From IMG/VR virus record IMGVR_UViG_3300028392_000029, positions 124,001 through 188,000 of that record: DNA of 64,000 nucleotides; one strand, 5' to 3'. Positions 26,196 through 42,347 of the stretch are shown piece by piece; the stretch's first letter is position 1; each line of letters begins with the position of its first letter. Below the pieces are notes generated by a model, which was not told the DNA's origin, ran no database searches, and was given only the letters and a program-made list of their open reading frames with translations. A program made the translations under genes and the position numbers.

Positions 26196-26879
26196 TCAAA
26201 ATTTATAAATTTCTATTGTGTATGCAGGATCTTTAAATATTTTTTCTTTGATTCTAATTTCTAATCTTGTCTTTCCACTATAGACTTTAACATTGGCTAA
26301 AGTAGGGTCGATGATTGATGTTACTACCATTGATTTATTTTGTTTACTAAATGTACATGCAGTATCTAAATACCTTAGTGCAGTATTACTAATTTTAAAT
26401 CCTGCTAGCGAACAATTCAATGTATTTGAATCTCTAAAAATAGACAACAAATAGTATTCTTTAATAGCCGATACTTTTTTCATCCAACCATTAACATACA
26501 GATTCCACACTTGCTGTTTATCTTTATTTTTAAAATACTCTGATGACAGTTCTGTTTCCGATAATGGTTGATACATACTTGCCTCGGTAGTAGCAGTTTT
26601 CAGAGTTTGTACACTCTTAACGTCAATGCCAATATTACTACCAACACTTACATCGGCAATACCTTTGCCAGCACCGCACCATTTACCCCCGGCGATACTA
26701 TCTGCAACTGCATATTCCCATAATTCTTTACCCATGCTAGCAGGCCGACCTAATGCAATATGTTTACGTAACGGCTGTATAACAGGATCAATTTCTTTTT
26801 GAAACTGTGCTATAAAATCCTTACCGACTAATATTTTTAATTCGGAAGCCAGCATAGGAGTAAGACAGTAGTTGCTCAA
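26196..26879 (-). CDS. Putative PD-(D/E)xK restriction-like nuclease
   Basis: GKELWE...GIADVSV...GIDVKS arrangement of acidic residues and Lys. Confidence 0.45.
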   Translation of the reverse strand: MSNYCLTPMLASELKILVGKDFIAQFQKEIDPVIQPLRKHIALGRPASMGKELWEYAVADSIAGGKWCGAGKGIADVSVGSNIGIDVKSVQTLKTATTEASMYQPLSETELSSEYFKNKDKQQVWNLYVNGWMKKVSAIKEYYLLSIFRDSNTLNCSLAGFKISNTALRYLDTACTFSKQNKSMVVTSIIDPTLANVKVYSGKTRLEIRIKEKIFKDPAYTIEIYKF

Positions 26880-27895: not shown

Positions 27896-28584
27896 TTTAG
27901 ATTTTCTGTTATAGTATTAAAAATAGATTGATCCATGAATGGCACAGATTTTGTTATGCTAACATAGTTGTTTACTTTTGGTCTAAGATCAAATGCTATG
28001 CTAACTCGAGGAGTGTCGCCTTGATATGCGTCACTCCAATGTGGAACACAACTAGGAAATAGTGTAATGTCGCCTTTGTTATTTCCAATAACAACATTTG
28101 ATGTAGAATCAAATGGTGACTTATATGTATTTGTGGTGTTGTATGTATCTAAGTGCATATTACCACTTAGATAGGATTCTGGATCTGCACCATGCCCGTG
28201 TTCGCCGATAGACTCCCCAGCTCTTGCAATGTTAAACCAAGAATACAGTTGAAGTTCTCGCCAATTACCATCTTGACTAGCCATGAATTTTAGGTATGCA
28301 ATTCTAATAAAATTTAACATGTCATCTAACTCTGGACATTCTTTGTTAAACTGAAACAGATTATATTTGCCATGCCTTGCGGTCACACTTGCGTCTCCAA
28401 GACCAGTTCCGCCATCGTGATGTACGGGATACCTGTTTATAAAAACTTGTTCTTGTGAAATAAGCCAATTGCGAATGGTATCAATTTTATCATGATCAGC
28501 CCACGTATCCATTCCTATTGGAAAATTCCATGTTGGTGCAAATTCAGTTTTTGCATCGGGACTTTTTATCTTAGCAATTCTCAT
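27892..28584 (-). CDS. 2OG-Fe(II) oxygenase-like protein
   Basis: SWFN...EHGH...YLSG, LFPSCVPHWS, RVSIAFD. Confidence 0.75.
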   Translation of the reverse strand: MRIAKIKSPDAKTEFAPTWNFPIGMDTWADHDKIDTIRNWLISQEQVFINRYPVHHDGGTGLGDASVTARHGKYNLFQFNKECPELDDMLNFIRIAYLKFMASQDGNWRELQLYSWFNIARAGESIGEHGHGADPESYLSGNMHLDTYNTTNTYKSPFDSTSNVVIGNNKGDITLFPSCVPHWSDAYQGDTPRVSIAFDLRPKVNNYVSITKSVPFMDQSIFNTITENLK

Positions 28585-29015
28585 TTAACTTCGGCTTTGC
28601 CGCCACCTATTTTACTTACATTAATATACCCAGCACTAGCTCTTCCCGGGTCTTGTCCAGCCTCAGCCAACATATTTGATGCTAGATCTCTGAACCAACG
28701 ATCTACTATTTGTTCTTCTGGATCACCATCAAATCCGTAGCCTGCTTGCTTCAATTGTACTATAAATTCCTGATTCCAGTCAAGTTCAAAAAAGCCATTT
28801 CGAATATTATCTTTATTCACATGCGTATCCAAAACACTAACCCAAGGTTCACCTCGTGCAGTAGCACGTTCCTTAGGAGTAGCTTTGGCTTGTTCTTCTG
28901 CTTTTTGTGCTAGTACTGTCTCTGCAACTGCCTTGTCTCTAACAATTTGAAGTGCATCTTTTTCAGCTTGTAGTTTATCGATGCCAAGCCATTTTCTAAA
29001 TAAATTTTTAATCAT
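28581..29015 (-). CDS. Hypothetical protein
   Basis: Start moved to MIKNLF, overlapping the queE stop (TAATG). Confidence 0.65.
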   Translation of the reverse strand: MIKNLFRKWLGIDKLQAEKDALQIVRDKAVAETVLAQKAEEQAKATPKERATARGEPWVSVLDTHVNKDNIRNGFFELDWNQEFIVQLKQAGYGFDGDPEEQIVDRWFRDLASNMLAEAGQDPGRASAGYINVSKIGGGKAEVK

Positions 29016-29860
29016 TAAGTTCCCCACTCGTTTTTAAAGAGTGGAACTTGTAAACGATCGCTATAGCGCCACCCACGTTTCATAGCCGATAGTGCTACAT
29101 TTTTTGCGTTCAATGTATAAACACTTTCCACACCGCCTACTGGCATTAGATAAACATGTCCTTTAAATCCTGCCGACTTAAATTCTGTTACTGCACGTTC
29201 TGCATCTAAAATGTCATCCTCTGTTGCCACAACAAATTTAAGATATGCAGTACCAACTTGTTCATATTCACGAACTACTTCTGGAAGAATTGCTTCTTCC
29301 CACTTTTCACCACTTGCTGGTAATTTGGCACTGACGCTAAACGTAAGTTCTTTACCAACTTCGCTATTCCATTTAGCTAGATAGCTTTTAAATTCTGGAG
29401 TAAGTTTTTGAGTACCATTTGTTTCAAATGTAATTTCTTTCAATGCTTTCATTTTGGGATTGTTAAGCAAATCTGGATAAGCACGTTGCCAACCTAACAA
29501 AGGCTCACCGCCTGTGATAACCAAGTGTTCATCTTGCCATTCATTATGTGGAATAATTTCCATAATACGATCTGTAATTGCTTCGCTTGTAAGCATTGGA
29601 CTTAGATCTTTAAAACTTGGATGCCAACTGGCATAGCTATCACACCCGGTGCTTACTAACGGCAAGTGTTCGTATTTTTCAAACATATGAGCAACCGTTG
29701 CAATCTCTTCAGCTTCTTCGCTGAACATGCCTCGACTCATGCCAAATCCAGCACATTTAAAGTTGCAACCAAATGTACGCAAGAAAACAGACGGTACACC
29801 CATGTAACGTCCTTCGCCTTGAATTGAATAAAATAATTCTGCTATTTTAATTTTGCTCAT
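29015..29860 (-). CDS. queE: 7-carboxy-7-deazaguanine synthase (radical SAM)
   Basis: ELFYSIQGEG, VFLRTFGCNFKC...CDS, ITGGEPLL, FETNGT, SVSAKL, RLQV. Confidence 0.88.
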   Translation of the reverse strand: MSKIKIAELFYSIQGEGRYMGVPSVFLRTFGCNFKCAGFGMSRGMFSEEAEEIATVAHMFEKYEHLPLVSTGCDSYASWHPSFKDLSPMLTSEAITDRIMEIIPHNEWQDEHLVITGGEPLLGWQRAYPDLLNNPKMKALKEITFETNGTQKLTPEFKSYLAKWNSEVGKELTFSVSAKLPASGEKWEEAILPEVVREYEQVGTAYLKFVVATEDDILDAERAVTEFKSAGFKGHVYLMPVGGVESVYTLNAKNVALSAMKRGWRYSDRLQVPLFKNEWGT

Positions 29861-30083
29861 CTTCGCCTCTTTCTAAAAATTGTGATACTTGGTGTTCGGC
29901 ATCTTGAATACTTTCGGCCCATATCTCAAACGTAGCAATGCCGTTACTAGCATGAATATCAAAAGGCACAGTACCTCTAGGTAACCAGTTAGGCCCAACT
30001 TCTCGTTTAATCTCAAACTTATTTAGGTCCGTGGTTTTCATACGGTAAATTAATTCGTCAGTTAGTTGTTTAGCGTTTGTCAT
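29847..30083 (-). CDS. Hypothetical protein
   Basis: 78 aa ORF. Confidence 0.55.
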   Translation of the reverse strand: MTNAKQLTDELIYRMKTTDLNKFEIKREVGPNWLPRGTVPFDIHASNGIATFEIWAESIQDAEHQVSQFLERGEDEQN

Positions 30084-30414
30084 CTTGCTGTTTCCTAAAC
30101 TCTTCTACATCTATTATAGCACTCTTTAATGTTTCTGCATAGTTCAAAGCACCTTGCGATTTCAAACAAACAGTTGATTGGGTATCTATATAACCTTTAG
30201 TAAGCAAGGTCCAAATATGATACCATCGTGTTTGAGTCCAAAAATTAGTTCTAACTGTAGTATAGATAGTTACTTCAACGCCAGTATCGTCTGCTTCTAC
30301 CCATACGTTATGATCGCATTCAGAACTACCACATTCACATGTAACGCGATAAACTTTTGAGTCTCCCCAATCGTTATGCTTTAAAATGCCTTCCGCCGGC
30401 GCCTGAACTTTCAT
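30070..30414 (-). CDS. Hypothetical protein (CECG...CDH motif)
   Basis: 114 aa ORF. Confidence 0.6.
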   Translation of the reverse strand: MKVQAPAEGILKHNDWGDSKVYRVTCECGSSECDHNVWVEADDTGVEVTIYTTVRTNFWTQTRWYHIWTLLTKGYIDTQSTVCLKSQGALNYAETLKSAIIDVEEFRKQQDDKR

Positions 30415-30584
30415 AGTGCCATTATCCTTGCAATAACTTGTTTAGCTTCTGTGCAATCGTTACGTTCTACTTGTGCTTCAATCGCACGTTCAACAGCCTC
30501 ATGCAATTGACGTAGGTAAGGACGCTCGTTAATAGTTGAATAGGGTTGTGTCCAGCGTAAGGTATACAAGTGTCGAGAGTTCAT
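30411..30584 (-). CDS. Small hypothetical protein (57 aa, absent from the ORF track)
   Basis: Hand translation MNSRHLYTLRWTQPY...VIARIMAL; ATGA overlaps at both ends. Confidence 0.6.
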   Translation of the reverse strand: MNSRHLYTLRWTQPYSTINERPYLRQLHEAVERAIEAQVERNDCTEAKQVIARIMAL

Positions 30585-31318
30585 TTTGAAGCATACTCCT
30601 GTTGCATTTTGATATTGTCAAAAAATTCTTTCTTTGTACTCTGGTCGTCTTTAAACGCACCTTTCAACACTGTGGTCTGTGTTAGACTAGAGTGTGCCAT
30701 AATGCCACGATTTTCACAGCAACCATGTGTAGCTTGAATGTATACACCTAAGTTTTCTGCTCCAGTTGCTTTTTGGATTTCTCTAGCAATGTCGTTGCAA
30801 AGTTCTTCCTGGAGAGTCCCGCGACGAGCACACCACTGAGCAATACGAGTGTACTTGCTAAGACCAATAAGTTTTTCTGCGGCGATGATGCCAATGTAAG
30901 CGACACCGCTAACGGGCTGATGATGATGACTGCACATAGAGCGCAACTCGCTACGTACCACCAACATACCTTCGTAACGGTCCGCTGAATCGTTTGGAAA
31001 TGCTGTTGCGTCTGGTGCTTGTTCATATCTTCCTGCCATAACTTCATTAAAATACATTTTAGCCAATCGCTTGGCTGTGCCTTTGCTGTTAGGATCAGTT
31101 TCACGATCGATTAGCAGTGTGTCTAATACTTTTTCAAAAGCTTCTGTAGCTTCATTGATTAAGATTTCCTTGTCACCTTCGTGTAGGTAATCGCTAATGT
31201 TATCTCCAGCCCAGAAACGTTTGTTATCACGTTTCATTTTAAAGCGGATAGCATCTGCAAGGTTACATTCCTCGTAGCCTTTGTCGTCAATATTTTTGTA
31301 TGTTACGGATTCAGTCAT
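30581..31318 (-). CDS. folE: GTP cyclohydrolase I
   Basis: TAKRLAKMY, SMCSHHHQP, IGLSKYTR, LQEEL, HGCCENRG. Confidence 0.95.
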   Translation of the reverse strand: MTESVTYKNIDDKGYEECNLADAIRFKMKRDNKRFWAGDNISDYLHEGDKEILINEATEAFEKVLDTLLIDRETDPNSKGTAKRLAKMYFNEVMAGRYEQAPDATAFPNDSADRYEGMLVVRSELRSMCSHHHQPVSGVAYIGIIAAEKLIGLSKYTRIAQWCARRGTLQEELCNDIAREIQKATGAENLGVYIQATHGCCENRGIMAHSSLTQTTVLKGAFKDDQSTKKEFFDNIKMQQEYASK

Positions 31319-31336
31319 TATTACTCCTATGTTAGT

Positions 31337-31365
31337 ATTATATAGGTTTATTTAGGTTTTTGCAA
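31337..31365 (-). promoter_or_regulatory. sigma70-type promoter of folE with embedded TAAATA
   Basis: TTGCAA-17 nt-TATAAT followed by AGGAG and ATG. Confidence 0.7.
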
Positions 31366-31376
31366 ATTTTTCGAGT

Positions 31377-31478
31377 TTATTTTGTTAGTTGGGGTACTAT
31401 AATAAATCCTAGTCCAAACCAAAAAATTAGATATTCAATCCAATATTTTTCTATCAATTCTGTAATTTGTTTTTTCAT
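31377..31478 (-). CDS. Small membrane peptide (33 aa, absent from the ORF track)
   Basis: MKKQITELIEKYWIEYLIFWFGLGFIIVPQLTK; ATGA overlap. Confidence 0.5.
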   Translation of the reverse strand: MKKQITELIEKYWIEYLIFWFGLGFIIVPQLTK

Positions 31479-31681
31479 TTTATTTTATCTGCTCGAAGTT
31501 TGCGACAGCCTTCTTTGACCGCAATAGGATAATCGGGACTTATTTCGGCAATTGAGCAATCGTATTTTACAGTAATATGAGGATGCTCGATTACATAAAA
31601 TACAGTGTAAGCACAGGCTATCAACGCACAAACTAAAGCAGTGATTACATCGTAATTTTGTCTGATAGTAGAATTTTGCAT
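31475..31681 (-). CDS. Small membrane protein
   Basis: N-terminal hydrophobic segment. Confidence 0.55.
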   Translation of the reverse strand: MQNSTIRQNYDVITALVCALIACAYTVFYVIEHPHITVKYDCSIAEISPDYPIAVKEGCRKLRADKIK

Positions 31682-31848
31682 AATTGATAATCTTTTTTTG
31701 ATTTAAAATTAAACGACATATCTTCGAAGCTCGGATGATATGTATATCGTTCTCCAGGCAATCCAAATACTTCTACTACATCTGCGCACATTTGATTCCA
31801 CCAATTATTATCTTGGTCGTGCCAGGGAATTACAATTTTATAATCCAT
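31645..31848 (-). CDS. Hypothetical protein
   Basis: Start moved to MDYKIV. Confidence 0.5.
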   Translation of the reverse strand: MDYKIVIPWHDQDNNWWNQMCADVVEVFGLPGERYTYHPSFEDMSFNFKSKKDYQLCKILLSDKITM

Positions 31849-32215
31849 TACGATAATTGCCCTTGCTGGGAATGACATGACGAACTCCTCCACGTGGATC
31901 TGGCATATCTCCTTGACGTCTTGGGATCATATGCACATGTGGATACATTACTGTTTGTCCAGCAACTTCGCCGACATTTTGCCCAATGTTGAATCCTGCC
32001 CATTTTTCCGATTCAACCCCGTCGTAACCAAATTGGTATGCGGCTTTGAAGCAGTCATATAAGTTTTCAGCTCTTTTGTAGGTAGGCACAAATAACAAAT
32101 GCCCTTCGGTAACTGGATATGCATCTTTAAACACCCAAAAAGTTTTTGTTCTATATTCAATTTCAGTCCACGGTGCAGACTTGTCAGCTAATTCACGTTC
32201 AAGATCTGTTAGCAT
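31838..32215 (-). CDS. HIT family hydrolase
   Basis: YPVTEGHLLFVP, GFNIGQN.G..AGQTV, variant triad YPHVHMIPR. Confidence 0.88.
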   Translation of the reverse strand: MLTDLERELADKSAPWTEIEYRTKTFWVFKDAYPVTEGHLLFVPTYKRAENLYDCFKAAYQFGYDGVESEKWAGFNIGQNVGEVAGQTVMYPHVHMIPRRQGDMPDPRGGVRHVIPSKGNYRNGL

Positions 32216-32393
32216 TTTCTAAATTTTTTAATTCGTCTATTAAATAATCTTTATACTCAGCTAACAAGGTACTTTTGCGGTCATTGCCGGCTTCACCTTG
32301 CAATTTTATGATGTCAGCCTCTACCATAGCAATCTTATCTTTCAAATCTTGCATAGATAATGGCTGATTATTTAATTGGTCTACTTGTCTCAT
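32199..32393 (-). CDS. Hypothetical coiled-coil protein
   Basis: 64 aa ORF. Confidence 0.55.
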   Translation of the reverse strand: MRQVDQLNNQPLSMQDLKDKIAMVEADIIKLQGEAGNDRKSTLLAEYKDYLIDELKNLENANRS

Positions 32394-32590
32394 GATCTGC
32401 GTGATCCAAAACTTAATCCACTAGCACCGCCTAGCAGGATTGCAAATGCCGCCCAAGTTTCCCAAGTCAACGGAATGTGTAGCACTGGAAACAGTGTGTT
32501 CAAAGCCCATATACCTAGTATGGGTCCGAGTGCAATGGCAATTACAATTAGAGTAAGGCCAAATATTAATTTAATTAATGCTGATGTCAT
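32390..32590 (-). CDS. Small membrane protein
   Basis: Two hydrophobic segments; start moved to MTSAL. Confidence 0.55.
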   Translation of the reverse strand: MTSALIKLIFGLTLIVIAIALGPILGIWALNTLFPVLHIPLTWETWAAFAILLGGASGLSFGSRRS

Positions 32591-33078
32591 AACCAAAATT
32601 CCTCCCAAGGATAAACTAACCAGCAGTCTTCCTCTGCCTTATTTACAGTCCAGACATAGTAATCTGGATCTTTAAACTGACTTGACTGATTGTGTGTCAA
32701 TACTGCAAAGCGAACTGAGTCTCCCCAAATAGTTTTCCAATTAGGATGACCTGGTAATGCACTTGACTCCCAGTCTTGCTTGATCCAAGCAACAGTGGAT
32801 CCTTGATCGTTAATATCATCAACGATCAGTATCTTTTTACCTTCAAATGCATCTTCTGCCATGCCACAGTTACTTACACAATCTCCGCCGTCACGTAGAC
32901 TAACATCTAAACTTAGCATTTTAATGCCAGTATATTGACTAAGAAGATTGGCAGGAACAAGCCCGCCCCGGGTAATGCCCACAATGTAGTCAGGTCGCCA
33001 ATTGTGTGCTGACATCTGTCGAGCAATATCTAAACAAGCACCTTCTACTTGAGACCAAGTATAATAAACTTTTTTCAC
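32587..33078 (-). CDS. Purine phosphoribosyltransferase-like protein
   Basis: VGITRGGLVPA and the PRPP loop ILIVDDINDQGST; C-terminal WLVYPWE. Confidence 0.85.
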   Translation of the reverse strand: MKKVYYTWSQVEGACLDIARQMSAHNWRPDYIVGITRGGLVPANLLSQYTGIKMLSLDVSLRDGGDCVSNCGMAEDAFEGKKILIVDDINDQGSTVAWIKQDWESSALPGHPNWKTIWGDSVRFAVLTHNQSSQFKDPDYYVWTVNKAEEDCWLVYPWEEFWL

Positions 33079-33305
33079 GCAACTAGTCCGTTTGCAAGTA
33101 CTTGCATCTCTTGCTTGGTCATAAAGAAGTTATATGTTTGCGAGTCAATAACATCACCGTCTTTTAATGACTCCTGTAACATGTTAATACTAAACAAACC
33201 TTTAGGGCTTAGTACTTCATGCTTTTTAAGCGTCAAACGAAATCCTTCGTTTTCTTTAATAACCATTTCTTTATAGGTATCTTTAACTGATTCATGTAGT
33301 TCCAT
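33075..33305 (-). CDS. Hypothetical protein
   Basis: Start moved to MELHES, 6 nt after AAGGAG. Confidence 0.55.
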   Translation of the reverse strand: MELHESVKDTYKEMVIKENEGFRLTLKKHEVLSPKGLFSINMLQESLKDGDVIDSQTYNFFMTKQEMQVLANGLVA

Positions 33306-33729
33306 CTTCATCTCCTTTAATTGCTTCAAATGTTCTATACTTACCCAATGCATTGATGTATTCATCATACAGTTTCTTTAGCTTTGGATGCTTCTTCTCT
33401 AGTTTAACATCTCGTTCTGGAATTTGCAACACCTTTTCGATTGTATCTAACCGTTCTTCCAAGTCACGGCCGTTGATAACCATTCGACCTTTGACTTCTA
33501 ATTCTGGTGGATTATTTTTGGCAACCAATACATTGTCGCCGGGAAAATTTCTCCAACTAGTTCCGTTACCAGTTGATGTTAAAAACTGTCCTGCGGATCC
33601 AGTATTATTAGTTGTATAAACTGTTCCAACTGTTAGTGGAGTTGCCGGCGGAACGGCATTACCGTACCCAATAGATACAGTGCTTCCAATCAAGCCATTA
33701 CTGACGGCGTTCTTCAAGATAGTTGTCAT
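33292..33729 (-). CDS. Hypothetical protein, Thr/Gly-rich N-terminus
   Basis: 145 aa ORF. Confidence 0.6.
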   Translation of the reverse strand: MTTILKNAVSNGLIGSTVSIGYGNAVPPATPLTVGTVYTTNNTGSAGQFLTSTGNGTSWRNFPGDNVLVAKNNPPELEVKGRMVINGRDLEERLDTIEKVLQIPERDVKLEKKHPKLKKLYDEYINALGKYRTFEAIKGDEDGTT

Positions 33730-34168
33730 TGTGTATCCATTTGTTGTTTACCCAGAATCCCCATTCTTGCTGTTGCGGCCCAGGCATAAACAAGGTCCAA
33801 GGTGTAACACCGGGTTTCAATTCAATACGGTGATAGCTGTTGGCACTGCAAAATCTAAAATGCCCAGGCCCCCGCCAGTGTTTGGTTTCACTGACCATTT
33901 TGCCGTATTCAAAATTAGGGGTATATTCGTAATAGCCGCCTGCTAATATTAAAGTAAAATACGGCCACGGATGATCGTGTACATCTCCGGGATCACCTTT
34001 ATGGAATTTATGTAGGAACGCATTAAACGGAAATCTCTTACGATCTTTTAAAAACAGATAATAACGAGTTAGCAACGGCTCGTTACATTGACGATCCATA
34101 ATAATACGTTTGCGGTCATTCCGCTCTAGACAGTTAAGGCTTAGGTCTTTGATCTTCTGGAGTATCAT
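33698..34168 (-). CDS. Cupin-fold protein
   Basis: LHKF...HDHPW...GGYYE...HRIEL...WTLF cupin-like pattern. Confidence 0.6.
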   Translation of the reverse strand: MILQKIKDLSLNCLERNDRKRIIMDRQCNEPLLTRYYLFLKDRKRFPFNAFLHKFHKGDPGDVHDHPWPYFTLILAGGYYEYTPNFEYGKMVSETKHWRGPGHFRFCSANSYHRIELKPGVTPWTLFMPGPQQQEWGFWVNNKWIHNDNYLEERRQ

Positions 34169-34520
34169 AGTGATTTTTTACAAGTAGGTAAGTTGTTTTA
34201 AATTTTTCAAAAGCTATTGCTAGACCTGGATATTCTTTACACATTTTCTGTATCCGATTCCAATCCGGGAATGTGTCAGCCCATTCTTCTGTAGAAGGAT
34301 TAAATGTAAATGCAGAAATGCTAGCAGAGGATAATGTCGAAATAGTTCCAGTAGTTAATCCGATACCAGTACCTAATGTAACTGTACCCATATTATTGCC
34401 ATAATAATATGAGCTACCGTTACCTATATTAGCCCCTATATTAGCAAATGTAGAAGTATCTATAGTAATAGTGTCATTTGATGTTATTGAGTAAGTTGTT
34501 GGCACTGAAGAATTGGTCAT
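34134..34520 (-). CDS. Hypothetical protein, Thr/Ser/Gly-rich N-terminus
   Basis: 128 aa ORF. Confidence 0.6.
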   Translation of the reverse strand: MTNSSVPTTYSITSNDTITIDTSTFANIGANIGNGSSYYYGNNMGTVTLGTGIGLTTGTISTLSSASISAFTFNPSTEEWADTFPDWNRIQKMCKEYPGLAIAFEKFKTTYLLVKNHYDTPEDQRPKP

Positions 34521-35571
34521 ATAAATCCTTTGCTTGTTTACGTATGGCAGGTATCCTTGTGGAATAATTGTCCATGTGTTCTATTATTGCACGGCATAGA
34601 TCTGGTCTATAAACAGTGTAAGTGTCATAGTCGTTGGTCCATACACTGGGATACTTGAATGTATCATAATACATCTCTGAGTAGCTGAGTCTATCTGGAA
34701 CCATAGGTATAGCATCGACTACCGCACCTTCATAACAACTGATACCTAGTGTTTCTTGTAAGTTGGCACTGAACACCATCTTCGCTTCGCCTAACAAGTT
34801 ATGATATTCATTTTTTGTTAGCTGTTGATCCTGACACACTACAAATTCATACTGCGGTAAATGTGCGGCCAAGTCTCGAAAGATATCTACCTGCTTCTCT
34901 GGTGCAATACGATGTGGGAACAAGATAAGATCACGCTTGGGCATATTCTTATACATGGTCAAGGTATCTTCCATATACTCCATGGGCCAACCGGTGCGTA
35001 CAAATCTAGGATCTTCGCCGGCAATAATGTCTGCCAGATCTTCTTCTAACCACGGATTTTCTGTAGGATAATCGTTTAGAAGATTAGTAACAAACATTCG
35101 GATATGAAAATCGGTGGCAAAGTAGTTGTGATCAAATGCGTGAAAGAAACTCTTCTCAGCATTTCTGACCCAGGGCTTATTGCCAACCAGTCGACCTAGA
35201 AAGTCTTGAGGATCATATGATCCAGCATGCCACAGGCCATGTGTAACTACTGGAATATTCAATAGCTCACTCATGTACTTTAAGTTGATGATGCCAGGGT
35301 GCCAAGCGTCAGTAAACAAAAAATGATCCCCAGGCTTAACTGCTCCGGAGCAAAATAAACGACCCATCTGCTCAACTTGACTAGCTTTATATATGTTAGT
35401 TCCACCAAAATTGAGAAAAGCGCCAGGGGTGGTAGCAGTCGGAATATCTGTAGGTCCGGAAATAATTTGAACATTGTGTCCTGCCTTTTTAAGTAACGCA
35501 GGTACATGAGTCTTCCATTGACCCGTGTACCTTGTCTCAACTGATTCTAAGTCGACTAAGAATACGTTCAT
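34474..35571 (-). CDS. GT-B (GT4-like) glycosyltransferase
   Basis: LFPHRIAPEKQ and the Ex7E signature QETLGISCYEG...PDRLSYSE; HAGSYD. Confidence 0.75.
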   Translation of the reverse strand: MNVFLVDLESVETRYTGQWKTHVPALLKKAGHNVQIISGPTDIPTATTPGAFLNFGGTNIYKASQVEQMGRLFCSGAVKPGDHFLFTDAWHPGIINLKYMSELLNIPVVTHGLWHAGSYDPQDFLGRLVGNKPWVRNAEKSFFHAFDHNYFATDFHIRMFVTNLLNDYPTENPWLEEDLADIIAGEDPRFVRTGWPMEYMEDTLTMYKNMPKRDLILFPHRIAPEKQVDIFRDLAAHLPQYEFVVCQDQQLTKNEYHNLLGEAKMVFSANLQETLGISCYEGAVVDAIPMVPDRLSYSEMYYDTFKYPSVWTNDYDTYTVYRPDLCRAIIEHMDNYSTRIPAIRKQAKDLYDQFFSANNLLNNIK

Positions 35572-35822
35572 TATTCTACAGTAGCATACTTTGGATTTTT
35601 GCCCTGATATGGCTTGCGCTCACGAGAGCTGTCCAGACGTTTAGGTCTACGTGATTTTTCAAAGTTTCGCCATGCCCAACTTTCTCTGTTATAAAGATGG
35701 GACTCATCAAACGGAAACATTTCCAACCGACAGAAATTGTGATATGCTTCTAGATCATCAAAGATCTTAACAACATCAGGACGGTTTTCGAAGTAAGCGT
35801 AGTCTTTGTAATTTTTAGCCAT
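35571..35822 (-). CDS. Hypothetical protein
   Basis: Start moved to MAKNYK, after AGGAAAG. Confidence 0.6.
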   Translation of the reverse strand: MAKNYKDYAYFENRPDVVKIFDDLEAYHNFCRLEMFPFDESHLYNRESWAWRNFEKSRRPKRLDSSRERKPYQGKNPKYATVE

Positions 35823-35841
35823 GATAGCTTTCCTTGTATTT

Positions 35842-36231
35842 TTAATACTTAATAAATGAACCATTTTCTCCGTCTTCGGAGACCTCAATCCAAACCTCAC
35901 GGCCTGGATACTTGCTGGAAATAGTATCAAACAAATCGCCTGACATCATCTCGCAACTCTTGTAGTCTAGTTGGAGTGTACCCTCTGCGTACAATTTTTC
36001 CAACCAGCGTTTAAACTGAATAAACTCAATATCGCGATCATCGTGGGTGACACTAATCCACACTTTGAAGTGGAATGTGTGGCGATGCGGATAGCCTAGA
36101 AAACTTACATCATATTCATCACCTGTAGCAAGTGCTGTATCTGTAAGTGCGGCTGGATATTTGTGAATACCTTCTTTCTGAAAGGTAACCCAAATCATTT
36201 TGTTAGGACGAATGTCTTGTTTAATAATCAT
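35842..36231 (-). CDS. QueD/PTPS-like T-fold protein
   Basis: EGIH...HRHTFHF (cf. HGH), DIEF (cf. DF), SCEM (cf. TAEN), VSEDGENG. Confidence 0.7.
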   Translation of the reverse strand: MIIKQDIRPNKMIWVTFQKEGIHKYPAALTDTALATGDEYDVSFLGYPHRHTFHFKVWISVTHDDRDIEFIQFKRWLEKLYAEGTLQLDYKSCEMMSGDLFDTISSKYPGREVWIEVSEDGENGSFIKY

Positions 36232-36803
36232 ACAGTTTCTTCAAAGAGTGAGGTATAAGTTGATATAGCCATGTTTTCAAGTGTTTTCATATCTTCATCA
36301 CTTAGTCTAAAAGAATAAGATTTAGACTTCGGTAAATGCACTTGTTCAAAATATCCGTAGAAACCTTCATAAGGTGTATACCCGATATTTTCATTCATTG
36401 TAATCAATGTTTTAGCATTGTTATATGCTTTTTCTATCAGTGCTTGAATGTGCGGAGCAGAAAAATCGTAAACTCTTGCTTCGATAATCACTCCGCCTTT
36501 AATTTTAATTCTTAACTGTTGTTGAAACTTTTTCCATACATGGGAATTCTTGTAGTCATTATTAATAATGTCTTCAGCATGCATATCTGCAATAGTTTGC
36601 GCACTAGTTGCATCAACATCTCGAGTTTTTACTTCAAGACCGTATACTAATATGTCTGCGCCATGACCTCGATTAATAGGAACACCCATAGATTCAAGTA
36701 ATGCTTCGACGGCTCTACCTGCATATCCGCCAGCACTTGCTGGTACTTTTTTGCCAATTAGTTGATCAGCAATTTTAAATACTTTTACTTTTGCCTTTAT
36801 CAT
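36228..36803 (-). CDS. MutH/Sau3AI-like PD-(D/E)xK endonuclease
   Basis: GYAGRAVEALLE...GADILVYGLEVKTR resembles the MutH-family G..vE....D....G.ElKT pattern. Confidence 0.6.
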   Translation of the reverse strand: MIKAKVKVFKIADQLIGKKVPASAGGYAGRAVEALLESMGVPINRGHGADILVYGLEVKTRDVDATSAQTIADMHAEDIINNDYKNSHVWKKFQQQLRIKIKGGVIIEARVYDFSAPHIQALIEKAYNNAKTLITMNENIGYTPYEGFYGYFEQVHLPKSKSYSFRLSDEDMKTLENMAISTYTSLFEETV

Positions 36804-37324
36804 TTGATAACTTCATCGTTTTTATATTGAGACCAGTCTGTAAACTTACTTCTATCCATTAGCGTATGTAGACTGTGGGACCATACACCGGGATTAGTTG
36901 CCTTAAAATCTTTGTCATCTATTTTAAGCATTGTATTATAATTCCACAATTTAATGTAAGGAATTGGCACTCTTATTTGCGGAATAAAGTTGTTGTAGTC
37001 ATTCAATCCACCGTCATTAAACTCTTCTACAGCACTTAATGGAATATCTAGACTGCATATATAACCTTCTCCTAGGAAGTATTCAATCATTTCTTCCCAT
37101 TTTTTCCAACCAGCATAGTCGTTGAATACTGGATTAAAACTGTGATTTGCACCAAAGAAAATATGCTCGCAATCATTGTTCACTGCATGAAATGCAATTT
37201 GATCAATTTGTTGAATACCTGTAACAAACAAAGTTTTTAATCCGTATGCAGGAGTATGTTCAATTTCTGTGCCAACAAAAAATGTCACTTGCTCGCTTAC
37301 ACCAGTTGTATAATCACGTTTCAT
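36800..37324 (-). CDS. Hypothetical protein
   Basis: 174 aa ORF inside the modification locus (HIFFGANHSF). Confidence 0.65.
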   Translation of the reverse strand: MKRDYTTGVSEQVTFFVGTEIEHTPAYGLKTLFVTGIQQIDQIAFHAVNNDCEHIFFGANHSFNPVFNDYAGWKKWEEMIEYFLGEGYICSLDIPLSAVEEFNDGGLNDYNNFIPQIRVPIPYIKLWNYNTMLKIDDKDFKATNPGVWSHSLHTLMDRSKFTDWSQYKNDEVIK

Positions 37325-37565
37325 TCTTTTCTGCCTTCGATCGTTCGTACACTTTAAACATTCTAGTTACATCTTCTATACGTTCAGCAAAATGCTCAGG
37401 AGCACCTCGAGCCGCCGCTTTCATATCATATTCTTCGGGATAGTGTCTTAAACAAGCTCGAGCACCGTCTTTGATTGCTTTTGGAACTCGAGGAGTAGTC
37501 AGGATCTCTAATAGAAATCTTTTAGTTTGTACTACTGCTCGATATCTTTCATCTGGTAACGTCAT
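37314..37565 (-). CDS. Hypothetical protein
   Basis: 83 aa ORF downstream of a TATAAT promoter. Confidence 0.6.
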   Translation of the reverse strand: MTLPDERYRAVVQTKRFLLEILTTPRVPKAIKDGARACLRHYPEEYDMKAAARGAPEHFAERIEDVTRMFKVYERSKAEKNET

Positions 37566-37571
37566 ATTTGT

Positions 37572-37599
37572 ATTATACAGTGATTGTAACTAAAATCAA
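37572..37599 (-). promoter_or_regulatory. Possible sigma70-type promoter
   Basis: TTGATT-16 nt-TATAAT, 6 nt before the ATG at 37565. Confidence 0.45.
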
Positions 37600-38816
37600 T
37601 CGTTTTGGCCAAGTTCGTCAAATATGAACGGCGAACCTTTAAAATAATTATATCCAAAAAACTCATCCATAATAGATAAACTATGTGCTGAAAACAATAT
37701 TGGGGGACCGTTTGCAGGTAATCCCATATCATATGCACGTTGGTTATAGGCCATTAGTTTTCTAAACTCGATATCTCCAGCTAGATTATCTTTTGAGTTT
37801 TGACTAGCTTGCCGCCAAAATTCTGTATCAAAATTACTACCACCGTGATAGATATAGTTAATAATACGTTCTAAAGTCTGTGCTAATCTAACTTGTTCAG
37901 CGTTGGCTTCTTCTTGATTCATTTGACCTGTAACATACTTAAAAATAATACCACATACGTTTGTATAGTGGTTAATCGATGTTGCACTAATTGGTTCAAA
38001 GAATATAGCACGATTGCCGTTCTTGATAACTCTGTTATCAACTAATTTAGTAGTATAATAGGGTTTGAATTTATACTCTTTAGTATCTAATTCGTCTATA
38101 GTTATTTTTAGCATTTCAGCCATGTCAGCTTTTGCATCTTCAACAGTAGTGATTGTGTCGTTAAACAAATAACCATATGTTTTTCTACTAGTTAACGGAA
38201 TTCCAAACATCCATCCATTCTTGGTAGCAAAGTGTTCTGTGTACTGAATAGGATCAAATCTTTCAAAGCTATGTACTAGACATCTGTTTAGAATACTGCA
38301 AGTACTCATATGATAGTCTTCAGAGTAGTCTGTAGGGAAACCTCTGCAATCTATAACATAATCAAATTCTTCATTGGTTCCATTTATTTCTACAATAGCT
38401 TTATCAGAATTATTAATAACATTAGTTACTGTGCCTTCAATTATGGAAAACTTTTGCGGCCAGCATAGAGCTAATCTTTCAAATACAAATTCTTTTAATT
38501 TAAAATTATTAAAATGTACAGCTACCCCGCCCTGTAGCAATGGGTTCAACCATTCCCACTTACGCCAGTTAATATACTTTGTTCCAAATTTAAGTGTGCT
38601 ATCTAATTTTGGAGTATCTTCAAGAGTTGTAAATCGTGTACCTTTTTCCAGTAAGCCAATAAATCCAGGATTAGTACTTTCGCCAATTCCTAAAATAGGA
38701 ATAGCTGGGTCATACAGTGAAACAATGTCCCATTCATTAGTAAGTGTTGAGCAAAGGTGCGACAATGTTAGCACCCCAGCACTACCTACTCCTAGTACAC
38801 CAATACGTTTCTTCAT
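37596..38816 (-). CDS. Tryptophan-halogenase-like flavoprotein
   Basis: GVLGVGSAG FAD motif, GIGEST, IDCRGF, GWMFGIP, FFEPISAT. Confidence 0.75.
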   Translation of the reverse strand: MKKRIGVLGVGSAGVLTLSHLCSTLTNEWDIVSLYDPAIPILGIGESTNPGFIGLLEKGTRFTTLEDTPKLDSTLKFGTKYINWRKWEWLNPLLQGGVAVHFNNFKLKEFVFERLALCWPQKFSIIEGTVTNVINNSDKAIVEINGTNEEFDYVIDCRGFPTDYSEDYHMSTCSILNRCLVHSFERFDPIQYTEHFATKNGWMFGIPLTSRKTYGYLFNDTITTVEDAKADMAEMLKITIDELDTKEYKFKPYYTTKLVDNRVIKNGNRAIFFEPISATSINHYTNVCGIIFKYVTGQMNQEEANAEQVRLAQTLERIINYIYHGGSNFDTEFWRQASQNSKDNLAGDIEFRKLMAYNQRAYDMGLPANGPPILFSAHSLSIMDEFFGYNYFKGSPFIFDELGQND

Positions 38817-40438
38817 TTAACTTCTCCCTCTAGCTCGTCTAGTTTAGACATTTGATCTTCAGAAAACTCTCCATCTTCTACTTCAATCTCTGCTGTGCTT
38901 GTTCCTACTTCTTCAAACAAATTAGTAAACATTGATTGTGAGTTTAGTGTTTTCTTACCTGTAGCACCTCGAGTTCCAATAATACTCATCCAGAATCTGC
39001 TGTATTCTTCTACCACAGCATCTGCGGTGCCCCGGTCACTAGTTGCAAAGATAGCTTCGATTACATCTTTAAAATATAATCTATCAAACTTTTCTTGTAC
39101 TAGCATATTAGGACAACTGCCTAAATCATATTGTCGATTAGCTTCTTGTACTGCGTTCACATGCATCCAAACATTATGACCCATCATAACAGCATAGGTA
39201 AAACTATCCCAACTTGTTCTATTACTGACTTTACCTAGTTTGTTAACGTCCGGCATTACTGTCCAGTGTGCGGGATTATACGGATCTAGGATTGTTCCGG
39301 GTGGAACATTTGGATTTGGAGTACCAGCGTTGTAGATACAAATTTCATTCATAAGAACACCGTCCATAATTGGACTAGTTGTAAACTTAGGAAATATTTT
39401 ATCCTGTATTACTGCGTCTTGGAAGAGTCTAGTATCTGTTGCGTATTTCTTGTCGTCAGCAGAAGCCTGCATACGGTAGACCCATTTTGTCCTATCGTCT
39501 GTTTCGACATTAGTATAGATTTGTCCGTTTGCTGTTGCAAGGAATGGACTTGCGCAGTCAAAAGAGATGGTAAAGTTTTCATTATGGTATTTCCTAACAG
39601 CACGTTGAATATCGGTTAAAAGAACTGCCCACTCTAACTTAGAGGTGCCTAGGAAGTGCATCCAATCATGTTGACCCTTTTCAAGGAGCCCATCGAATCG
39701 TAATGCCACTAATCTCTTTAGTACAAGGTGGATGTCACACATATTCTGCCCACCCATACCCCAACCGTTAAATGCACGATCGCCGTATTGCGAGCGATCA
39801 CAGTAACGTTTCATTCGTTGATACCAATCTTCGGCATCTGTATGCGTTTCACCTTGTAGTACGTTTAAGAACTTACAGTTACCATTGCGATTATTAACAA
39901 AGTAATCGTTATTGATATATGTGCCTTGCACAGCCTCTGCATATGAACTAATGCCAGTTGCCGCAACACCTGCTGGACTACGAGCAACCCAAGCTGGGAT
40001 ATCAAGACCCATGCCGTAGTCCATTAGTGTGTCCATCCAAGTAAGAACTTGCTGTCGCTTCTTCATAGCTTTAGGACAGTTAGGATCTTTCCAGTCGGCT
40101 GGCCAAACACCTTTACCAATCTGGAATCCGCCTGAGTCACCTAATACCCAACTAGTACTACGATTACGATTTCGGAACATGTCCTCGCTTTCATCTTGTT
40201 TATTCAAATCAAGATTAGCATGGCCTGCCGAATATAAACAGTGGTCATAATAAAATGCACCTTTATCTGGATCAAGATAGTTAAGACTTTCAACACCGTT
40301 TTTAAAACTTTTAGGAATACGTGTAGGATCTACGTAATTGCTATAGCGTTGTTTTCCGATAAAGGTGCTATAAAAGCCGCTAGTTGCTGGCAAGAATACA
40401 GCATAGTCGTTTTGTGTTGCGGTAAGATTTCTATTCAT
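38813..40438 (-). CDS. dpdA: TGT-fold base-exchange enzyme (DpdA-like DNA transglycosylase)
   Basis: DSGGFQ, LDIP, LNVLQG, GWGMGG, WMHFLG, SFDCASP, HNV: ordered TGT-family motifs; linked to folE/queD-like/queE. Confidence 0.75.
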   Translation of the reverse strand: MNRNLTATQNDYAVFLPATSGFYSTFIGKQRYSNYVDPTRIPKSFKNGVESLNYLDPDKGAFYYDHCLYSAGHANLDLNKQDESEDMFRNRNRSTSWVLGDSGGFQIGKGVWPADWKDPNCPKAMKKRQQVLTWMDTLMDYGMGLDIPAWVARSPAGVAATGISSYAEAVQGTYINNDYFVNNRNGNCKFLNVLQGETHTDAEDWYQRMKRYCDRSQYGDRAFNGWGMGGQNMCDIHLVLKRLVALRFDGLLEKGQHDWMHFLGTSKLEWAVLLTDIQRAVRKYHNENFTISFDCASPFLATANGQIYTNVETDDRTKWVYRMQASADDKKYATDTRLFQDAVIQDKIFPKFTTSPIMDGVLMNEICIYNAGTPNPNVPPGTILDPYNPAHWTVMPDVNKLGKVSNRTSWDSFTYAVMMGHNVWMHVNAVQEANRQYDLGSCPNMLVQEKFDRLYFKDVIEAIFATSDRGTADAVVEEYSRFWMSIIGTRGATGKKTLNSQSMFTNLFEEVGTSTAEIEVEDGEFSEDQMSKLDELEGEVK

Positions 40439-40789
40439 TTAGATCCAATGTTGTACTAGAACCATAAGACTTAACCAAGCCCACATGGTATTGAAACCGA
40501 CTAGCGTTGGTAATGACTTTTTACGACTAGCCCAAATAAGTGTTACACTAGTTAACAAGGTTAGGTAGTATAATTGCCAGATTTGAATTCCAAAGATTAA
40601 ACCTGGAATGATAATGATTGCCTTGGCCAGCCAACTGACAAATTCTACAGTATTGTAGCCAGTCCAATATTCTTTTGTAAACCACATCATATAGCAGTCA
40701 CGCATATTTGCCCAACCGCTATGTGAGTAGCAAATTACCATTAACACTAGCCATACACCTACAGCTAATAAAATTTGATCAGTAGTCAT
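40439..40789 (-). CDS. Small multi-pass membrane protein
   Basis: 3-4 hydrophobic helices in 116 aa. Confidence 0.6.
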   Translation of the reverse strand: MTTDQILLAVGVWLVLMVICYSHSGWANMRDCYMMWFTKEYWTGYNTVEFVSWLAKAIIIIPGLIFGIQIWQLYYLTLLTSVTLIWASRKKSLPTLVGFNTMWAWLSLMVLVQHWI

Positions 40790-41520: not shown

Positions 41521-41540
41521 ATGATTCTCCATGTTTAATG

Positions 41541-42346: not shown

Positions 42347-42347
42347 A

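Follow-up and report, generated by a model that had tools for sequence, protein, structure and literature searches.

A predicted 7-deazaguanine DNA-modification locus with a dedicated, predicted glycosyltransferase gene in a large environmental phage

Which base would replace guanine in the DNA of a phage whose deazaguanine gene set lacks QueC but includes a glycosyltransferase (GT)? The question is raised by a window of 64 kb, the whole stretch of DNA analysed here, taken from IMG/VR virus record IMGVR_UViG_3300028392_000029. In a preliminary description based on sequence alone, queE, folE, a QueD-like T-fold gene, a TGT/DpdA-like gene and a GT-B glycosyltransferase were noted on one strand without any recognisable queC, queF or Gat-queC, and it was inferred that the base may be dCDG, dDG or a sugar-decorated deazaguanine. 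That observation is confirmed, as all five genes are found on the minus strand at the positions given, and the GT is indeed two genes away from the T-fold gene, one small ORF lying between them. The preliminary description did not mention a tryptophan-halogenase-like gene, a phosphoribosyltransferase (PRTase) gene and a UGDH-like gene, all in or beside the interval. The features are as follows.

29015-29860, minus strand: QueE-like radical-SAM enzyme (CPH4 to 7-carboxy-7-deazaguanine, CDG)
30581-31318, minus strand: GTP cyclohydrolase I (FolE)
31838-32215, minus strand: HIT-family nucleotide hydrolase/transferase
32587-33078, minus strand: purine (xanthine/guanine-type) PRTase
33698-34168, minus strand: cupin-like protein conserved in the clade
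34474-35571, minus strand: predicted GT-B glycosyltransferase of 365 aa (GT4/GT5-like, retaining type)
35571-35930, minus strand: small conserved ORF between the GT and DpdL, in which a later ATG near 35822 would remove the overlap with DpdL
35842-36231, minus strand: DpdL of 129 aa, a QueD paralog proposed as CDG decarboxylase
36228-36803, minus strand: accessory insertion, possibly a MutH/restriction-endonuclease-like protein, not part of the core
36800-37324, minus strand: p174, a conserved unknown protein of the GT/long-DpdA class
37596-38816, minus strand: flavin-dependent tryptophan-halogenase-like protein, a rare accessory insertion, not part of the core
38813-40438, minus strand: predicted long DpdA-type guanine transglycosylase of 541 aa (TGT-fold TIM barrel with a C-terminal extension)
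41573-42415, minus strand: truncated UDP-glucose-dehydrogenase-like gene (N-terminal and central domains only)

The enzymes for deazaguanine synthesis are identified mainly by profile searches. The QueE-like protein matches PHROG 2076 ('QueE-like radical SAM') at 1.3e-51 and five NCBIfam QueE models at 1e-10 to 1e-16, all far below their equivalog cut-offs, and its homologs occur in PA5oct (gp162), X1, ACP17 and Vibrio phage 2.275.O. FolE is recognized by Pfam PF01227 (GTP_cyclohydroI) at 1.2e-39 and by NCBIfam FolE at 7e-41, and is 59% identical to Phosso FolE and 53% to Vibrio phage 2.275.O FolE. The T-fold protein, which has no Pfam hit, matches PHROG 17812 at 7e-32, and tblastn finds Phosso (70%), ACP17 gp125 (56%), PA5oct gp166 (56%) and phiST CGPG_00067 (30%, 2e-6). 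Because its motif L-G-Y-P-H-R-H-T-F matches the LxxxHRHxF signature of DpdL (PMC10516641), this gene is DpdL rather than QueD.

The two large proteins are recognized from their predicted structures. The 541-aa protein has no Pfam or NCBIfam hit, but its AF2 model has a pLDDT of 89.5, and its 24 PDB matches at E<=1e-3 are all tRNA-guanine transglycosylases (TGT/QTRT1). The catalytic Asp motifs are conserved: across 84 homologs D101, S102, G104, H261, G264 and D294 are invariant and Q106 nearly so; the profile aligns DSGGFQ to TGT residues 101-106, and the Asp of 'FDCASP' corresponds to the FDC motif of bacterial TGT. Its homologs include PA5oct gp168 (36%) and proteins of Phosso and Vibrio phage 2.275.O, and the family profile hits ACP17 gp123 at 3.4e-10. 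The GT does not itself reach any Pfam threshold, but its AF2 model has a pLDDT of 93.8 and yields 168 PDB matches at E<=1e-3, headed by GT-B glycosyltransferases, with glycogen synthase first (Foldseek, 4.7e-10) followed by BshA, GlgM, MshA and PglA. Its R221, K226, E273 and E281, comprising the catalytic residues of an intact EX7E motif and the Arg/Lys residues, are invariant in 55 homologs.

The remaining genes differ in how widely they are conserved. The PRTase matches Pfam Pribosyltran at 2.6e-12 and NCBIfam xanthine PRT at 5e-12, the latter below cut-off, and it recurs in the deazaguanine clusters of PA5oct (gp163), BUCT-ZZ01, where it is annotated XGPRT, and L188, L087, L173/179/189 and L197 (L numbers designate relatives examined here). 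The HIT-family gene (Pfam HIT, 7e-8) is conserved beside the PRTase in this clade and found in 35 of 80 clade loci, the same PRT-HIT-FolE order occurring in the marine relative L197. The cupin-like gene matches PHROG 4786 ('cysteine dioxygenase') at 6e-34 and is found in 65 of 80 clade loci and in L197, but not in the other lineages, while the small ORF at 35571-35930 is found in 73 of 80 clade loci and in L188 and L197. Homologs of p174 are ACP17 gp122 and proteins of L188 and L197; it shares a weak N-terminal motif with the small ORFs just upstream of the GT in X1 and BCSR5, has no Pfam or PDB hit, and gave only weak leads in the Atlas. The MutH-like gene (Pfam MutH at 0.0063, below cut-off, and no PDB hit) is found in only 8 of 80 clade loci. 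The halogenase-like gene (Pfam Trp_halogenase, 4e-30; PDB PrnA, 3e-15, and VirX1, 1.7e-8; cyanophage homologs up to 39.6% identical) is found in only 4. The UGDH-like gene carries the Pfam UDPG_MGDP_dh central domain (2.6e-23) and N domain (1e-10) but no C-terminal domain. It is found in 59 of 80 clade loci, lies next to QueD in L186/L187, and is replaced in L197 by a nucleotidyltransferase plus an NAD epimerase/dehydratase. It is a possible sugar-nucleotide supplier, although this link is inferred.

Is the route truly QueC-less within the window? When phage QueC, QueF, Gat and nine QueD sequences were searched by tblastn against all six frames, nothing better than E=0.07 was obtained, and Pfam scans of 50 ORFs found none of these genes, the plus-strand structural ORFs at 16-19300 being covered by the tblastn only. 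Likewise, no QueC, QueF or Gat was found in any of about 21 DpdL loci examined with 6-10 kb flanks. The absence extends to canonical QueD. The preliminary description had counted FolE, QueD and QueE as the makers of CDG, but the only T-fold gene here is DpdL, and a true QueD must come from elsewhere in this jumbo genome, as in PA5oct, or from the host.

Does the GT belong to this gene set? A lack of co-occurrence of the GT with dpdA in relatives had been set beforehand as a possible refutation, and the linkage holds. Among the DpdL loci, DpdL with a long DpdA has the GT in 12 of 12 contexts, three of which were found by searching with the GT alone, whereas DpdL with the phiST-type DpdA3 lacks it in 9 of 9 lineages. 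GT homologs lie beside DpdL in PA5oct, ACP17, Phosso, X1, BCSR5, BUCT-ZZ01, L181, L188, L197, L199 and L201. No homolog was found in the KVP40-like Vibrio phages or in Vibrio phage 2.275.O, which have long DpdAs plus QueC. The relative L188 carries the whole set, DpdA, p174, DpdL, GT, FolE, QueD, PRT and QueE, in about 8 kb. However, the pattern may partly reflect shared ancestry, because the DpdL tree is unresolved and only one independent contrast lies on supported branches. Sugar-nucleotide genes also recur variably, with the UGDH-like gene here and in L186/L187, a nucleotidyltransferase plus epimerase in L197, and a second GT in BUCT-ZZ01.

Taken together, the locus is best explained, with slightly better than even confidence, as the DNA-guanine modification module of a PA5oct-related environmental jumbo phage, of the QueC-less 'DpdL' type. 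In this view, FolE would convert GTP to dihydroneopterin triphosphate, a QueD encoded outside the window or by the host would make CPH4, the QueE-like enzyme would produce CDG, and DpdL would remove the carboxyl group to give 7-deazaguanine. The 541-aa DpdA would then exchange guanine in phage DNA for that base, and the PRTase would recycle the released guanine to GMP, which feeds FolE again. Finally, the GT, helped by p174 and by phage sugar-nucleotide genes, would add a sugar to the deazaguanine, either on the DNA or on the base before insertion, giving a hypermodified base. Homology, fold or motif establishes the identities of FolE, the QueE-like enzyme, DpdL, the TGT fold and the GT-B fold, as well as the absence of QueC from the window and the strict gene linkage. 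In contrast, the chemistry of DpdL, which was proposed by Cui et al. but not demonstrated, DNA as the target, the salvage role of the PRTase and, above all, the acceptor of the GT are inferred.

DNA is the likely target given that DNA of the relative PA5oct resists restriction enzymes in a pattern indicating modified G (PMC12191111), and that phiST, with DpdL, has dG fully replaced by dDG (PMC10516641). Glycosylation is less secure, being inferred without chemistry measured for any GT-bearing phage. 7-Deazaguanine has no hydroxyl or amine at C7, and a retaining GT4-like enzyme, whose known acceptors are mostly hydroxyl groups, therefore has no obvious acceptor on dDG. Moreover, DpdL activity failed to reconstitute in E. 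coli for both phiST and ACP17, and, with QueD missing from the window, CDG synthesis is not self-contained here. The earlier interpretation is thus partly supported: every part of it that can be tested by computation came out as predicted, but these data do not discriminate among dDG, dCDG and a glycosylated derivative, a true QueD is missing, and the locus type is not new.

The alternative that survives best, although doubtful, is that the DNA carries plain dDG or dCDG as in phiST, while the GT, linked to the cluster only by inheritance, acts on something else, such as another DNA base, a virion or host glycoconjugate, or a pterin intermediate. Besides the missing acceptor group and the unproven phylogenetic independence of the linkage, phiST-type phages reach full dDG replacement without any GT, and one of the 168 PDB look-alikes is a pterin glucosyltransferase (5zer, rank 24). 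On the other hand, the GT is adjacent to DpdL or DpdA in all 12 contexts, across hosts from Pseudomonas to Synechococcus; gene order varies, and in Phosso the DpdA lies about 170 kb from DpdL and the GT. In addition, no hydroxymethylase for hmC or hmU was seen in the window, where ThyX is an ordinary thymidylate synthase.

A less likely possibility is that the GT and p174 act before insertion, building a glycosylated or otherwise activated deazapurine that can be accepted by the long DpdA, whose relatives in other phages accompany QueC-made preQ0-type bases. This would explain why DpdA3 systems do not need them, and it fits the three-way pattern in which only DpdL with a long DpdA has the GT. 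Reconstitution with ACP17 dpdA and dpdL alone failed, and missing enzymes were suggested by the authors (PMC10516641), but phiST dpdA3 plus dpdL also failed in E. coli, so the failure is not specific to GT-bearing systems, and no precedent is known for a TGT-family enzyme inserting a glycosylated base.

It is unlikely that queC, perhaps with queF or Gat, lies outside the window and that the DNA holds an ordinary preQ0-derived base, with DpdL and the GT as side activities. The window covers only 64 kb of a genome likely over 300 kb, contigs of close relatives reaching 353-369 kb, and Vibrio phage 2.275.O combines the same DpdA family with QueC and QueF. Nevertheless, DpdL phages are reported to lack QueC (PMC10516641), no QueC lies in any DpdL locus examined, the PA5oct stretches read (about 150-195 kb and 211-236 kb of its 287 kb) have no QueC annotated, and published analyses of PA5oct list QueE and PTPS only. 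That the TGT-fold protein modifies tRNA as cellular TGT does is very improbable, since, although the nearest solved structures are all tRNA enzymes, identity to them is only 12-14%, the gene sits among replication genes next to PolB, PA5oct DNA is restriction-resistant at G-containing sites, and the related ACP17-type protein groups with DpdAs of KVP40-like phages, whose DNA is reported to be modified.

Among characterized systems, the Cellulophaga phage phiST dDG system (FolE, QueD, QueE, DpdL, DpdA3; Cui et al. 2023, PMC10516641) shares the QueC-less route with FolE, QueE and a DpdL carrying the LxxxHRHxF signature, next to which lies a TGT-superfamily enzyme. However, phiST uses the short DpdA3 (259 aa), which has no detectable similarity to the 541-aa protein, has no GT, p174 or PRTase, and encodes QueD in the cluster. 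Acidovorax phage ACP17 (gp122-gp126) and Pseudomonas jumbo phage PA5oct (gp162-gp168) have the same core of long DpdA, GT, DpdL and QueE-like protein, with identities of 36-56%, ACP17 also having p174 and PA5oct the PRTase. PA5oct shares wider synteny with the window, from PolB to the exonuclease, and its FolE and QueD lie about 55 kb away, whereas ACP17 has a different long-DpdA subfamily, related only at profile level. Neither phage has the halogenase-like, MutH-like or UGDH-like genes, and in neither has the modified base been identified in the papers that could be read. The preQ0/dG+ systems of Enterobacteria phage 9g, Vibrio phage nt-1 and bacterial Dpd islands likewise use FolE and QueE to supply a deazaguanine that a DpdA inserts into DNA, but they need QueC, which is absent from the window, where DpdL and the GT are present.

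For the sugar-adding step, the working analogy is glucosyl-hydroxymethylcytosine of T-even phages, in which phage GT-B enzymes (alpha- and beta-glucosyltransferases) encoded with a base-replacement pathway act after the unusual base is in DNA and protect against restriction. There, the base is a pyrimidine with a hydroxymethyl acceptor, incorporated as a dNTP, and the enzymes belong to other GT families; a cyanophage DNA alpha-GT ranks only 41st among viral fold matches. In vertebrate tRNA, QTMAN/GTDC1 mannosyltransferase, a GT4-like GT-B enzyme, puts a sugar on a 7-deazaguanine derivative, the acceptor being the cyclopentenediol hydroxyl of queuosine. A bacterial QTMAN-like cluster appears among the structural look-alikes (TM 0.74), but there is no Pfam QTMAN_N match and the score is no better than for generic GT4 enzymes, so this is a resemblance, not membership.

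The QueC-less DpdL-type system is thus a published kind (PMC10516641), present with its GT in sequenced cultured phages such as ACP17 and PA5oct, and only the role of the GT is open, whose dedication to these clusters is, as far as could be found, unreported. As the GT gene accompanies DpdL in every cluster with a long DpdA examined, the final base in such phages may carry a sugar, which has not been described for a purine in DNA.

All genes between about 20 kb and 62 kb of the window lie on the minus strand, and the neighbourhood is a replication and auxiliary-gene region of a large phage. It encodes a family-B DNA polymerase (PolB, 42348-45017), a 5'-3' exonuclease, ThyX, an AAA ATPase, a VWA/metallopeptidase, a ClpB-like ATPase, a ferritin-like protein, a peptide deformylase, DnaJ, PhoH and a clamp-loader fragment. 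No cultured phage is close at the DNA level, as megablast of the 11.4-kb region against 50,697 phage records found nothing. However, gene order and protein identities of 35-56% tie the region to Pseudomonas jumbo phage PA5oct, the shared order running from PolB, through a clamp-like 'structural' protein, the 540-aa protein, a 353-aa protein and a 125-aa protein, to the QueE-like gene and the exonuclease. The phage belongs to a very abundant uncultured clade: a protein search found more than 7,700 homologs of the 541-aa protein, the best 120 of them 78-91% identical and on contigs up to 369 kb, and an IMG/VR scan found at least 598 close copies of the 365-aa gene on contigs up to 353 kb. In addition to the deazaguanine genes, the following features lie in or around the locus or elsewhere in the window.

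16-7863, plus strand: a single 2,615-aa ORF heading a plus-strand block of large ORFs (16-19985), presumably virion or tail-fibre genes
26196-26879, minus strand: a 227-aa ORF just downstream of the locus
27892-28584, minus strand: a 2OG-Fe(II) oxygenase (Pfam 9e-10) just downstream of the locus
32587-33078, minus strand: a xanthine/guanine-type phosphoribosyltransferase (PRTase)
36228-36803, minus strand: a 191-aa ORF between DpdL and the 174-aa protein p174, with a sub-threshold MutH (GATC endonuclease) Pfam hit (0.006) and no PDB match
37596-38816, minus strand: a flavin-dependent tryptophan-halogenase-like gene (Pfam 4e-30; PrnA 3e-15; VirX1 1.7e-8), inserted between DpdA and a small ORF at 37314-37565 upstream of p174
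40789-41532, minus strand: a conserved 247-aa protein between PolB and DpdA
41573-42415, minus strand: a UDP-glucose-dehydrogenase (UGDH)-like gene with only the NAD-binding and central domains

The 247-aa protein is also conserved in Vibrio phage 2.275.O, and its annotations disagree, as it is listed as a virion 'structural protein' in PA5oct (gp170, MS-detected) but as a 'DNA polymerase III sliding clamp beta' in Phosso.

The preliminary description had named five genes, queE, folE, a QueD-like T-fold gene, a TGT/DpdA-like gene and a GT-B glycosyltransferase (GT), without queC, queF or Gat-queC, and this observation is correct, with the T-fold gene sharpened to DpdL. Single-sequence searches of Pfam, NCBIfam and PDB gave nothing for the DpdA-like, DpdL and GT proteins, for which homolog alignments and structure prediction were needed. 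FolE is unambiguous, as it matches Pfam PF01227 at 1.2e-39 with 136 bits against a cut-off of 27. The radical-SAM gene belongs to the phage 'QueE-like' PHROG (1.3e-51), but five NCBIfam QueE equivalogs hit it at only 41-61 bits against cut-offs of 200-300 and Pfam Radical_SAM is below its cut-off, so that it is referred to here as QueE-like, a member of a divergent phage clade. The 129-aa T-fold protein is not a QueD. DpdL, the proposed decarboxylase of 7-carboxy-7-deazaguanine (CDG), has been defined by the change of QueD's CxxxHGH motif to LxxxHRHxF (Cui et al. 2023, PMC10516641), and the window protein reads L-G-Y-P-H-R-H-T-F at that place, with Leu at the position of the catalytic Cys and no Pfam PTPS hit. 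It aligns with the proteins of phiST and ACP17 and with 10 other DpdLs, whereas the three QueDs in the same alignment have Cxxx-H-G-H/Y. By tblastn it is 56% identical to ACP17 gp125, the very protein that those authors expressed (8e-32), and 30% identical to the founding phiST protein CGPG_00067 (2e-6), the latter relationship being found at 7e-14 by blastp. As is the case in about 21 DpdL loci, it occurs with FolE, QueE (here QueE-like) and a DpdA and without QueC, although QueD, which Cui et al. also list, is not in the window.

The 541-aa protein has no hit in any family library, but a search of 1.8 billion cluster representatives found 954 related clusters, and in an alignment of 84 of them D101, S102, G104, H261, G264 and D294 are invariant and Q106 is nearly so. 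With that alignment AlphaFold gave a model of pLDDT 89.5, for which all 24 PDB matches at E<=1e-3 are bacterial or eukaryotic tRNA-guanine transglycosylases (TGT/QTRT1), with TM 0.46-0.56 on the target. A search of PDB with the family profile gave only sub-threshold TGT hits (E about 0.7), which were consistent but not sufficient alone, and placed the DSGGFQ motif on TGT residues 101-106; the equivalence of D294 with the nucleophile Asp in the FDC-type motif of TGT rests on comparison by eye. The protein does not belong to the DpdA3 subfamily of phiST and Campylobacter phages, because tblastn with phiST CGPG_00065 gave no match in the window better than E=0.89, and jackhmmer from phiST DpdA3 collects nine DpdA3 proteins but not the window protein. 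The 365-aa GT models at pLDDT 93.8 with a predicted two-Rossmann GT-B fold, and its top Foldseek matches are the retaining enzymes glycogen synthase, BshA, GlgM, MshA and PglA at 5e-10 to 1e-7, with TM about 0.6-0.66. In 55 homologs E273 and E281 of the EX7E motif, together with R221 and K226, the Arg/Lys pair expected to bind the donor phosphates, are invariant, the roles of these residues being assigned by analogy with GT4 enzymes. The window protein itself has no Pfam hit at E<=0.01, including Glycos_transf_1, but several homologs have a PF00534 hit on record, and it is therefore regarded as a divergent branch.

No QueC, QueF, Gat or canonical QueD was found by tblastn in any frame of the window, where the best QueC match has E=1.1, or by Pfam among the ORFs scanned, which in the plus-strand block comprised only the last one (19293-19985). 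The absence of QueC thus concerns the window only and not the rest of the genome. DpdM and DpdN both act on preQ1, which needs QueC and QueF. Neither the 520-nt gap at 31319-31837, considered as a possible degraded queD, nor the 114-aa ORF at 30070-30414 shows similarity to nine QueDs, and no Rfam family, such as a preQ1 riboswitch, is in the window. The CDG pathway is therefore incomplete here. In PA5oct, FolE (gp231) and two QueD-type genes (gp230, gp226) lie about 55 kb from the DpdA cluster, a position that by synteny would fall beyond the 64-kb end of the window, and in a roughly 50%-identical relative (locus L188) QueD sits inside the cluster. Two IMG/VR scans with QueD queries, the first not exhaustive, returned no contig that also appears among the 80 GT-bearing contigs, which is not evidence of absence, although they did yield L188, the further locus L173 and others. 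Host QueD is the alternative source.

The main finding is that the GT belongs to the system, its counterparts being gp167 in PA5oct and gp124 in ACP17. DpdL-bearing loci were collected from cultured phages, from IMG/VR seeded with QueD, from IMG/VR seeded with the GT, and from metagenome contigs seeded with distant GT homologs, and their ORFs were classified with iterative profile searches, from which two classes emerge (loci with L numbers are those collected here).

Two classes of DpdL-bearing loci
Class I, DpdL plus short phiST-type DpdA3, no GT: phiST, MA9V-3, D479, Bakedbeans, Ahp1, RHph_I1_18, L173, L179, L189
Class II, DpdL plus this GT, no DpdA3, and a long TGT-fold DpdA where one was identified. 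With the 541-aa type: window, PA5oct, L188, L197 (a marine relative), and Phosso (where it lies about 170 kb from DpdL and the GT). With the ACP17 type: ACP17, X1/BUDD, BUCT-ZZ01, L199, L201. With DpdA unresolved: BCSR5, L181

The two long types are related at profile level (3.4e-10). Long DpdAs also occur with QueC, in Vibrio phage 2.275.O and in KVP40-like phages, but the GT search found no homolog in any Vibrio phage. The GT is therefore specific to the combination of DpdL with a long DpdA, being present in 12 of 12 contexts (DpdA unresolved in two of them), against 0 of 9 for DpdL with DpdA3. The window DpdL is more similar to some class I DpdLs (68-70%) than to class II ones from PA5oct or ACP17 (54-59%), which hints that the GT moves with the DpdA type rather than with DpdL. 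However, when GT presence was compared with DpdA type on a DpdL tree, the tree was too poorly resolved to prove independent events, with only one independent pair on supported branches.

Other parts recur as well. A purine PRTase appears here and in the clusters of PA5oct, L188 (6549-7109), L087, L173/179/189, L197 and BUCT-ZZ01 (locus L171, 3468-3929), that is, in several unrelated phage lineages both with and without the GT. It is inferred to act in salvage, since complete G replacement in a genome over 300 kb would release much free guanine by base exchange, which the PRTase would return to GMP and so to the FolE substrate; alternatively, it may make a deazapurine nucleotide, as ToyH and TubE do in toyocamycin and tubercidin biosynthesis. 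The 174-aa p174, a protein of unknown fold, accompanies the GT in ACP17, L188 and L197, and probably in X1 and BCSR5; Atlas, Pfam and PDB profile searches gave only noise-level leads to its function, and the annotated 'glycosylase' of Phosso, which sits at the position of p174, is not detectably homologous to it. Sugar-nucleotide genes occupy the same loci. The truncated UGDH-like gene of the window, which has the GFGGACFPKD motif, taken to be the catalytic-Cys motif, but no C-terminal UDP-binding domain, lies next to QueD in the relatives L186/L187, whereas L197 has a nucleotidyltransferase plus an NAD epimerase/dehydratase at the same position. In Synechococcus phage BUCT-ZZ01 a second GT-like gene (L171 5385-6728; weak Glyco_trans_1_4 hit, 3e-5) lies directly upstream of DpdA, in addition to the conserved GT after DpdL, hinting at two sugar transfers in that phage. 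This variability resembles the way T-even relatives differ in the sugar they attach. A small PAPS-reductase-type PP-loop protein (Pfam 1e-13) lies two genes upstream of the GT in Xanthomonas phage X1 (L167 6197-6730), with a 42%-identical homolog in Burkholderia phage BCSR5 (L168 7137-7784); because QueC is also a PP-loop enzyme, this could be a divergent amide- or nitrile-forming step in those two phages, but it is absent from the window.

Three genes in or beside the interval, the tryptophan-halogenase-like gene, the weak MutH-like gene and the 2OG-Fe(II) oxygenase, are rare insertions in this particular genome, occurring in 4, 8 and 3 of 80 close relatives respectively, and are not part of the mechanism; the 227-aa ORF at 26196-26879, found in 1 of 80, is likewise a strain-specific insertion. 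A halogenated deazapurine was considered, but the halogenase was rejected as a core component on the basis of this rarity. At 406 aa it is shorter than the 510-550-aa solved halogenases and belongs to a family common in cyanophages and pelagiphages, also present in Campylobacter phage CP21. If the MutH-like protein is a nuclease, its place inside a G-modification locus would fit attack on unmodified host DNA, which is speculation.

In the mechanism best supported, FolE, a QueD from elsewhere and the QueE-like enzyme would make CDG, DpdL would process it, and the TGT-fold enzyme would exchange it for guanine in DNA. What the analysis establishes by homology, motif or predicted fold is the identity of FolE, DpdL, the TGT fold and the GT-B fold (and of the radical-SAM gene only as QueE-like), the lack of QueC within the window and the linkage of the GT, whereas the decarboxylation of CDG by DpdL, the base exchange in DNA, the salvage role of the PRTase and, above all, the acceptor of the GT are inferred. 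DNA as the target is supported only indirectly, in that PA5oct DNA resists restriction at G-containing sites. The interpretation in the preliminary description, that the base may be dCDG, dDG or a sugar-decorated deazaguanine, is supported in part, since the locus is of the proposed QueC-less kind but the analysis does not discriminate among the three bases. Free or DNA-bound 7-deazaguanine has no hydroxyl at C7, so the acceptor is not obvious; candidates are the carboxylate of CDG or dCDG, the exocyclic amine, the electron-rich C7 or C8, and an intermediate made before insertion. The three-way distribution is compatible with a post-insertion decoration and also with a pre-insertion step that only long DpdAs need, the first being rated higher by analogy with glucosyl-hmC.

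Cui et al. (PMC10516641) could not obtain dDG from dpdL plus dpdA of ACP17 or phiST in E. coli and suggested missing enzymes, and the word 'glycosyl' does not occur in their main text; full-text literature searches found no paper describing a glycosylated deazaguanine or the chemistry of PA5oct DNA. The locus belongs to the published DpdL-type deazaguanine systems, with a long DpdA instead of DpdA3, and the embedded GT is a conserved, apparently catalytic (as judged from sequence and predicted fold) and so far undiscussed component of that variant. It remains a tentative proposal, judged less likely than not, that phages combining DpdL with a long DpdA make a glycosylated 7-deazaguanine in their DNA, a sugar-bearing purine analogue with the sugar varying between lineages according to the sugar-nucleotide genes in the locus. 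In this view the GT, perhaps with p174, would be the missing factor that explains why the pathway could not be rebuilt from dpdA and dpdL alone.

So far as is known, the glycosylated DNA bases of phages are pyrimidines (glucosyl- or arabinosyl-hmC, and sugar derivatives of hmU), and a sugar on a deazapurine would be a new class of DNA hypermodification, bringing new enzymology because the acceptor chemistry is not obvious. It would also affect restriction, CRISPR and modification-dependent nucleases, including the END nucleases that already sense PA5oct. The family is abundant, with the at least 598 close copies of the GT in IMG/VR and the 954 clusters at 50% identity of the DpdA, and it occurs in cultured phages (PA5oct, ACP17, Phosso, X1, BCSR5 and BUCT-ZZ01), so that the question is directly testable. 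Even if no sugar is found, the rule 'DpdA3 without GT, long DpdA with GT' is a usable handle on how dDG systems work, and it also bears on why their reconstitution failed.
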